Origin: Octopus sinensis
Taxonomy: Eukaryota
DNA length: 64,000 nt
Direction: 5' to 3'
Assembly: GCF_006345805.1 (NCBI RefSeq)
Contig: NC_043003.1
Span: 2,294,001 to 2,358,000 of the forward strand
The notes under the pieces: generated by a model
Seen by the model: only the letters and a program-made list of their open reading frames with translations
Databases searched by the model: none
What the model was told of the DNA's origin: nothing
Shown here: positions 44,970 through 45,211 of the stretch, in pieces
How positions within the stretch are numbered: the first letter of the stretch is position 1
How the letters are laid out: the number at the start of each line of letters is the position of its first letter
Program-made: the position numbers and the translations under genes

Positions 44970-45095
44970 ATATTTTCGTTTCTCTCGCCAGGTGTGTTTT
45001 TGCATAAAAATATATTTTCGTTTCTCTTACCAGGTGTGTTTTTGCATAAAAATGTATTTTCCTTTCTCTCACCAGGTGTGTTTTTGCATATAGTT
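44970..45095 (+). repeat. 42-bp tandem triplication spanning the exon 8 acceptor
   Basis: Units start at 44970, 45012 and 45054; each has a pyrimidine tract plus CAG|GTGTGTTTTTGCAT. Confidence 0.97.
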
Positions 45096-45211
45096 GCTGA
45101 TACATTAGGAAGTGTTGGTGTTATAATTTCTTCTGCCCTCATTCATCAGTTTGGTTGGATGATTGCTGATCCCATATGTTCCATGTTTATAGCTACTTTA
45201 ATAGGTGTCAG
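45076..45211 (+). CDS. SLC30A7: ZnT7 exon 8 ([45 protein letters not shown]), TM5 HxxxD ligands
   Basis: 136 nt from the third of three tandem acceptors; GTGAGT donor; motifs [11 protein letters not shown] and ADPICS. Confidence 0.95.

Follow-up and report, generated by a model that had tools for sequence, protein, structure and literature searches.

A copy-number-variable minisatellite spans the intron 7/exon 8 border of the zinc transporter gene ZnT7 in Octopus

At the border of intron 7 and coding exon 8 of ZnT7 in Octopus is a tandem array of a 42-bp unit, of which three copies are present in the O. sinensis assembly and nearly six in that of O. vulgaris. Because each unit holds a polypyrimidine tract, a CAG and 15 exon nucleotides, the intron ends in three or six near-identical, in-frame acceptors. 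We favour, at a probability of about 0.6, a reading in which this is a junction-spanning minisatellite whose last acceptor is the functional one, the upstream copies being intronic decoys or minor noise acceptors. The array is of value as a natural, and unusual, test of how acceptors are chosen and not as a demonstrated source of novel protein forms.

The ZnT7 gene of Octopus sinensis

The window, which is the whole stretch of 64,000 nucleotides of O. sinensis DNA analysed here, contains the coding region of ZnT7 (SLC30A7) on the forward strand between positions 17781 and 53392, in 11 coding exons placed by a tblastn exon map and by reading of the splice sites. The corresponding locus on chromosome CM016865.1 (L001) is identical in sequence to window positions 14781–56392. 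Spliced with the acceptor that opens exon 8 at 45076, the open reading frame encodes 368 amino acids and is 100% identical to a protein (P0001) annotated both in O. sinensis (XP_029638842.1, ‘zinc transporter 7-B’) and in O. vulgaris (CAI9725127.1). This protein contains a Cation_efflux domain (PF01545) and is named zinc transporter 7-like or 7-B. All 11 exons match human ZnT7 in the order of the human protein, and coding exon 8 matches it with an E-value of 3e-13 (PDB 8j7t, tagged chain residues 250–294), which bears out the initial annotation in its naming of the gene and the exon.

Encoded by exons 5–7 is the His-rich loop between TM4 and TM5. The C-terminal end of the loop, ...SQKQIMQ + G, lies in coding exon 7 (41242–41370), which is followed by the donor AAG|GTCTGG. 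Canonical coding exon 8 (45076–45211) encodes TM5 with its zinc ligands His and Asp and ends at a donor, CAG|GTGAGT, that matches the consensus at 9/9 positions. In human ZnT7 the TM5 ligands are His240 and Asp244, and the helix bends in its N-terminal, cytosolic half during transport (PMC10409766). H69, D73 and the H...D pair of TM5, which by the roles given in that paper form the HDHD zinc site of TM2 and TM5, are invariant columns in 59 aligned sequences.

A 42-bp array of acceptors

Tandem Repeats Finder reports a repeat of period 42 at 44970–45090 (2.9 copies, 93% matches, score 214), far beyond chance, with unit 1 at 44970–45011, unit 2 at 45012–45053 and a partial unit 3 at 45054–45090. 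The unit is composed of three parts: 22 nt of the 3′ end of the intron, comprising the pyrimidine tract and CAG (ATATTTTCGTTTCTCTCGCCAG); the first 15 nt of exon 8 (GTGTGTTTTTGCATA); and five nucleotides, AAAAT, that match neither flank of the array. Three identical CAG|GTGTGTTTTTGCAT junctions result, and a 17-mer across them, CAGGTGTGTTTTTGCAT, occurs exactly three times in the window and in the chromosomal locus. The acceptor dinucleotides lie at 44990–44991 (AG1), 45032–45033 (AG2) and 45074–45075 (AG3), so that the exon could begin at 44992, 45034 or 45076. Each choice keeps the ZnT7 frame free of stops, with 28, 14 and 0 residues added, respectively; AG3 alone gives the 368-residue protein. 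The three in-frame tandem acceptors described from the sequence at the outset, and the peptides of 14 and 28 residues that they would insert, were thus recovered at the same coordinates, as were the base differences between units, which fall at unit positions 1, 9, 17 and 18.

The open reading frame through the repeats was considered as a sign of selection and rejected as such: shuffling gives an in-frame, open array in about 13% of cases, and two of the three frames are open.

Owing to the AAAAT filler (45007–45011 and 45049–45053, at the ends of the full units), the array is not a clean duplicate of its flanks. The filler amounts to five bases, or to eight if the duplication used ATAT microhomology, and resembles neither the retroposon tail upstream nor the true exon (ATAGTT). 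Lacking it, the unit would measure 34 nt and be out of frame; the filler brings it to 42 nt and supplies the A-run that is the sole branch-point material for the internal acceptors.

Copy number and divergence between species

The array is longer in the O. vulgaris assembly (L002, OX597820.1), where it occupies 27100–27346 with 5.9 units, 96% matches and six junctions. Its left boundary is the same in the two species, and the flanks are nearly identical (100% over 300 nt upstream, 98.7% over 300 nt downstream). The outgroup octopod Argonauta hians (L003) has one acceptor only, ...ttattcaatag|GTGTGTTTTTGCATATACTT, which places the origin of the array in the Octopus lineage; searches for homologues returned no ZnT7 protein of O. 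bimaculoides among their matches. With a head-to-tail unit in the range of 10–100 bp and a copy number that varies between genomes within conserved flanks, the array is a young, copy-number-variable minisatellite of the Octopus lineage and not a fixed triplication. Its earlier description as a 42-bp triplication is right for O. sinensis but not for O. vulgaris, and the proposed comparison with related species finds the array in O. vulgaris and a single copy in Argonauta.

The ends of the two arrays have a common order of unit types (A..CG, then A..TG/TA, then G..CG/CA), and the O. vulgaris array appears to have grown internally from an ancestral array of three units. This order of distinguishable units also bears on whether a single acceptor was wrongly expanded by assembly or polishing. 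The assemblies, one per species, come from different individuals and technologies (PacBio and Hi-C for O. sinensis; ONT with 10x Illumina polishing for O. vulgaris), and the array, at 126–252 bp, is far shorter than long reads. The difference in copy number between the two assemblies is what such an error might produce, but an artefact is exceedingly improbable, in agreement with the initial annotation, which had argued against one from the unit differences.

The coding sequences of ZnT7 in O. sinensis and O. vulgaris differ at 3 of 1107 nt, all synonymous (dN=0), and the proteins are identical. The rate of aligned differences over the whole gene is 2.2%, and the array shows four differences over about 121 comparable nucleotides in addition to a length change of 126 bp. 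The array thus behaves like intron and not like constrained coding sequence, as judged from these rates. Given dN=0 for the protein, a length change of 42 residues just before the zinc-binding helix would, if translated, be unlikely to be tolerated. Within the portion of the array that could be translated, the two species differ at three sites, all of them synonymous third positions, which is a weak hint of coding constraint; they sit at the two CpG sites of the unit, so mutation bias would explain the pattern equally well.

The substitutions specific to O. sinensis in units 2 and 3, found by comparison with L002 27290–27352, are a G>A at 45029 that creates a CTTAC, a G>C at 45062 that gives an uninterrupted run of 14 pyrimidines, and a G>A at 45071. 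All three are at CpG or former CpG sites and would fall on synonymous third positions if the array were read in frame.

The retroposon upstream of the array

Directly upstream of the array is a copy of a SINE-like retroposon (44637–44971 on the forward strand, core 44695–44971), which ends ...aatgacgatgat and whose (GAT)n tail abuts unit 1. About 30 copies of this element of about 280 bp, 70–90% identical to one another, are present in the window, and their consensus 3′ end reads ...cggacgttaaaYgatgatgat(gat)n. The 3′ ends of nearly all copies align to 44969–44973 and unit 1 starts at 44970, so that the tail indeed ends where the first unit begins, as had been noticed at first sight. The element is thus SINE-like, of high copy number and tailed by (GAT)n; ‘RTE’, the label given to it initially, is a putative assignment. 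An Rfam scan of 44300–45300 for a tRNA, 7SL or 5S SINE head or any other RNA family gave one chance-level match (E=0.24).

Other copies include those at 3482–3738, 35759–36031, 48224–48498 and 57907–58165 and, on the minus strand, at 37455–37725 and 38391–38645. A sizeable share of the ZnT7 introns consists of such copies.

Between the retroposon and acceptor 1 the intron is just 20 nt long, which makes it plausible that the insertion displaced the old branch point. The retroposon tail itself, however, offers three branch-point candidates of the form U-n-A. In the sequence of events that we propose, the (GAT)n tail of the SINE would have been inserted 20 nt from exon 8, and a 42-bp segment spanning the 3′ splice site of intron 7 would then have been tandemly duplicated, starting directly downstream of the tail. 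Copy number has changed since: the ancestor that O. sinensis and O. vulgaris share would have had at least three units, and the sequenced O. vulgaris has six. A retroposon insertion beside an exon, followed by a junction-spanning duplication, may in this way remodel a branch-point and acceptor region and leave a conserved transporter unaltered.

Splicing signals within and around the array

Upstream of each acceptor, 16–17 of 22 nucleotides are pyrimidines, with an uninterrupted 14-nt run in O. sinensis unit 3 only, and the local strength of the array acceptors equals or exceeds that of the other ZnT7 acceptors. In O. vulgaris the units upstream of AG2–AG6 are identical, and nothing nearby singles out AG6. 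RNA secondary structure over the array that might hide the upstream acceptors was sought, and none was found beyond chance (z = -0.06).

Candidate branch points for acceptor 1, predicted by a scan for consensus and U2 pairing, lie in the retroposon tail at 44957–44970 (A44957 in cattaAa, A44964 in caatgAc and A44970 in cgatgAt). They are 21–34 nt upstream of the AG, and each matches three of the four yUnAy positions. A general rule of 3′ splice-site choice is that the first AG downstream of the branch point is taken; by this rule, the candidates predict that AG1 is competent, or used. The internal acceptors have less to offer. Before each of them is an AG-free zone of 40 nt, whose only adenosines are those of an A-run with a weak consensus, GCATAAAAAT(G/A)TA, in the exon-like half of the repeat; for the annotated acceptor this is the stretch gcAtAAAAAtgtA at 45046–45056, and its equivalent for AG2 is at 45004–45014. 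In O. sinensis the G>A at 45029 in unit 2 adds ctcttAc, a perfect yUnAy, 46 nt before AG3 and 4 nt before AG2. This CTTAC, which is absent from O. vulgaris, would be expected from its position to favour AG3 and bypass AG2.

Every junction in the array reads (Y)nCCAG|GTGTGT, so that each acceptor is followed directly by a donor-like site. The donor of exon 7 (AAG|GTCTGG, 41368–41376) is the weakest 5′ splice site of ZnT7, with 5/9 consensus positions and a U1 duplex of -4.8 kcal/mol, and it is weaker than the donor-like GTGTGT that starts exon 8 and each repeat unit. As it stands in the genomic array, CAG|GTGTGT scores 8/9 and -7.7 kcal/mol. The donor AAG|GTGTGT that would be regenerated by ligation to exon 7 scores 7/9 and -6.2 kcal/mol, which is stronger than the donor of exon 7 and much weaker than that of exon 8.

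Choice of acceptor

Both annotations, of O. sinensis and of O. vulgaris, give the 368-residue protein and thus the last acceptor (exon start 45076 in the window, 27332 in L002); in the record look-up, which keeps only the longest product per gene, the ZnT7 product is this 368-residue form. Iso-Seq and RNA-seq alignments are among the inputs of the O. vulgaris annotation pipeline, a statement that applies to the pipeline as a whole and not to ZnT7 in particular, and gene models may be steered by protein homology. A caution for annotation follows, in that homology-guided models silently pick the canonical site.

Exact look-up of the isoforms with 14, 28, 42, 56 and 70 additional residues in a collection of 15 billion proteins found none of them. 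Homologue searches with the junction and insert peptide and with the C-terminal 241 residues, which have no power for or against use of the isoforms, returned no Octopus sequence except the annotated protein and none with an insert; the one search among these with 127 residues had only proteins of at most 222 residues among its matches, the annotated protein being absent, and is blind to longer proteins. The Logan collection yielded no transcript contigs for ZnT7 of O. vulgaris or O. sinensis. For the isoforms that the initial annotation derived from the upstream acceptors, the splice sites are therefore real as sequence, but their use is unsupported, both annotations taking the last acceptor and the longer products being absent from the protein collection.

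Full-length ZnT7 transcripts from a cephalopod-like source (P0003, 368 residues, 81% identical) were present in the Logan collection on at least 29 contigs, for example L004–L007 from runs SRR24189493, SRR27666061, SRR27666088 and SRR27666077.

The point of insertion, QIMQ|GVFLH, is at the start of TM5 beside the zinc-ligand His and is among the most conserved stretches of ZnT7, being contiguous as QIMQ-GVFLH-I[LV]ADT in 132/136 full-length orthologues. On these grounds of conservation, alternative use of the upstream acceptors is probably minor. In the mechanism that we prefer, the most downstream acceptor would make the functional mRNA and the upstream copies would be intron. The branch point may be provided by the exon-like half of the preceding unit (the A-rich GCATAAAAAT, joined by CTTAC in O. 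sinensis) and the pyrimidine tract by the intron-like half. The upstream AGs would serve as minor ‘noise’ acceptors at the most; since one period equals 14 codons, transcripts made from them would stay in frame and escape nonsense-mediated decay. The last site may win through its nearness to enhancers in the body of the exon and to the strong donor CAG|GTGAGT, and CUCUCU or U-rich silencer-like sequence inside the extended exons may also disfavour the upstream sites.

Two of the differences between the O. sinensis units, the CTTAC at 45029 and the uninterrupted pyrimidine run of 14 nt, favour the last acceptor. Counting against the preferred reading are the local equivalence of the acceptors and the better branch-point candidates of AG1 as compared with the weak A-run of the internal units. 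The array, its variation in copy number, the single copy in the outgroup, the abutting SINE, the gene models and the pattern of conservation are observed, whereas the AG used by the spliceosome, the positions of the branch points and the reason that the distal site would win are inferred. If the last of three to six identical acceptors is chosen, ZnT7 offers a natural experiment in how 3′ splice sites are selected, one that sets branch-point scanning against exon definition and enhancer proximity, with sister species as built-in variants of copy number.

Possible use of the upstream acceptors in stable mRNAs

The strength of the acceptors may be taken in the opposite sense. If two or more were used substantially, stable mRNAs would encode ZnT7 with insertions of a 14-residue repeat, a reading that we consider unlikely. 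Equally doubtful is its corollary at the level of the protein, in which insertions of 14 or 28 residues in O. sinensis, and of up to 70 in O. vulgaris, at the border of the loop and TM5 would make ZnT7 length-polymorphic, possibly with altered zinc transport. All 9/9 acceptors of the two species are in frame and open, their local strength is equal to or above that of the other ZnT7 acceptors, acceptor 1 has good branch-point candidates, and no residue would be replaced by any of the three differences between the species in the part that could be translated. The open frame itself, however, is expected about 13% of the time by chance, with two of three frames open; no annotated or predicted product carries an insert; and the site that would be interrupted, contiguous in nearly all orthologues, is in the mechanistically mobile part of TM5. 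Purifying selection on the protein is strong (dN=0), yet the length of the array doubles between the sister species.

The inserted residues are of moderate hydropathy (mean Kyte–Doolittle 0.7–1.1), and no 19-residue window reaches 1.6, so that they are too weakly hydrophobic for an additional transmembrane segment and the topology need not be destroyed, which is compatible with translation. An AlphaFold2 model of the isoform with 28 additional residues places TM5 on the last copy of GVFLH and gives a pLDDT below 50 for the insert and for the His-loop; the low confidence for the insert counts against translated isoforms, but the model does not discriminate between the readings. GVFLH is duplicated in the repeat copies, and with it the zinc-ligand His, as the initial annotation had pointed out; the Asp of the HxxxD motif is not, the copies reading H-K-N-[IV]-F. 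Should the upstream sites be used in this way, a CDF transporter would, as is rarely seen, have an insertion of polymorphic length at its zinc-binding helix.

An extra membrane span that would flip the topology of the transporter was also considered and was dropped, as the inserts are not transmembrane-like by the Kyte–Doolittle scale.

Possible re-splicing of the repeats

The donor-like sites allow a further reading, in which the upstream acceptors, especially AG1 with its branch point in the SINE tail, would be used first and the repeats then spliced out again. The regenerated AAG|GTGTGT donor, or the internal CAG|GTGTGT donors, would be re-spliced to a downstream repeat AG to yield the canonical mRNA, with removal of 84 nt in O. 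sinensis or 84–210 nt in O. vulgaris as a recursive, ratchet-like or Rogers-type intron. We hold this to be quite improbable, although it would explain how AG1 can have good branch points while the annotated mRNA is the canonical one. The regenerated and genomic donors (7/9 and 8/9) beat that of exon 7 and are comparable to those of exon 2 and exon 9, recursive sites are by definition tandem acceptor–donor pairs, and duplications of a multiple of three nucleotides permit alternative patterns. In experiments, a duplicated AG|GT segment was spliced out as a new intron with an efficiency of about 6–16%.

Against re-splicing, one unit of 42 nt does not exceed the minimum length usual for introns and is probably too short to be one, and the version of 84 nt leaves about 37 nt between the 5′ splice site and the branch point. 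The regenerated donor would, moreover, have to compete with the very strong donor of exon 8. Under such re-splicing, copy number could drift freely (3 to 6 units) with the protein unchanged; in a variant, residual retention would give isoforms with 14-residue repeats specific to individuals or species, and this outcome, too, is hardly to be expected. If the upstream sites were used in this manner, the locus would be an instance of recursive-type re-splicing outside long introns.

Relation to known systems

The ZnT7 array combines known kinds of element, namely tandem acceptors, AGGT duplications and VNTRs. As in NAGNAG and other tandem alternative splice sites (TASS), several AGs stand in close tandem at the end of one intron, and an in-frame choice among them makes small insertions or deletions. 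According to two papers (PMC8055015, PMC2279118), most TASS events are seen as noise of the splicing process, with selection acting against them where the protein is structured. Catalogued TASS are 2–12 nt apart, in the TassDB2 definition, and share one pyrimidine tract and branch point, whereas the frame-preserving candidate sites of ZnT7 are spaced by 42 nt, have a duplicated tract each and vary in number (3 versus 6) between sister species.

In the Rogers model, duplication of an AG|GT segment gives a new intron (Hellsten et al. 2011, PMC3265369; Lehmann et al. 2010, PMC2891723). The ZnT7 copies are likewise each bounded by a potential acceptor and donor, removal of a redundant copy leaves the protein unchanged, and a unit that is a multiple of three allows in-frame retention. 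The AG|GT of ZnT7 is, however, an existing intron/exon border and does not lie within an exon, as an intron the unit would be very short, and it now forms a variable array of many copies, in which the spacing from GT to AG is 42 nt per unit with multiples of 84 nt in O. sinensis and up to 210 nt in O. vulgaris.

Recursive splice sites, or ratchet points, resemble the array junctions in their juxtaposed (Y)nAG|GT, present at each of the latter as CCAG|GTGTGT, and in the 5′ splice site that ligation of the upstream exon would restore. Ratchet points are conserved, have near-consensus GTAAGT donors and are found far inside introns of great length; the putative ZnT7 sites, by contrast, are young and repeated, have a GTGTGT donor and close an intron of 3.7 kb.

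A polymorphic repeat at a 3′ splice site is found in intron 8 of CFTR, as a (TG)m(T)n tract. The head-to-tail unit, fast change of copy number and near-identical flanks of the ZnT7 array are those of a minisatellite or VNTR, which beside a splice site may modulate splicing. In contrast to a tract of the CFTR type, the ZnT7 unit holds a complete acceptor and exon start, and copy number alters the number of acceptors, not the length of a tract. A shallow search of the literature found no equivalent case of VNTR units containing acceptors, and the literature searched for systematic data on duplicated 3′ splice sites gave no direct precedent. An 18-bp duplication across the junction of intron 13 and exon 14 of HEXB causes disease. 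There, too, a 3′ splice site has been duplicated, which places a further in-frame acceptor upstream and lengthens the protein; such events are single, recent and pathogenic, whereas the ZnT7 array is multi-copy, is present in both reference assemblies and is apparently tolerated in two species.

Other repeats in the ZnT7 introns

About 500 nt downstream of exon 8, two copies of the retroposon lie tail to tail in intron 8 as an inverted repeat (45686–45932 on the plus strand and 45971–46250 on the minus strand), with arms of 149 nt that are 89% complementary and 79 nt apart, and with further arms outside. They could form a long intronic hairpin of double-stranded RNA, which is of interest given the heavy A-to-I editing of the octopus. 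A second, unrelated family of short repeats (aagtaccagt...ggggtcgatg.aattgac...aaatttgaaac) has copies in the ZnT7 introns at 44411–44501, 40478–40566 and 61904–61978 and, on the minus strand, at 28880–28978. Related to this family is a sequence at about 26900–26990 of the Argonauta locus (L003), just upstream of exon 8.
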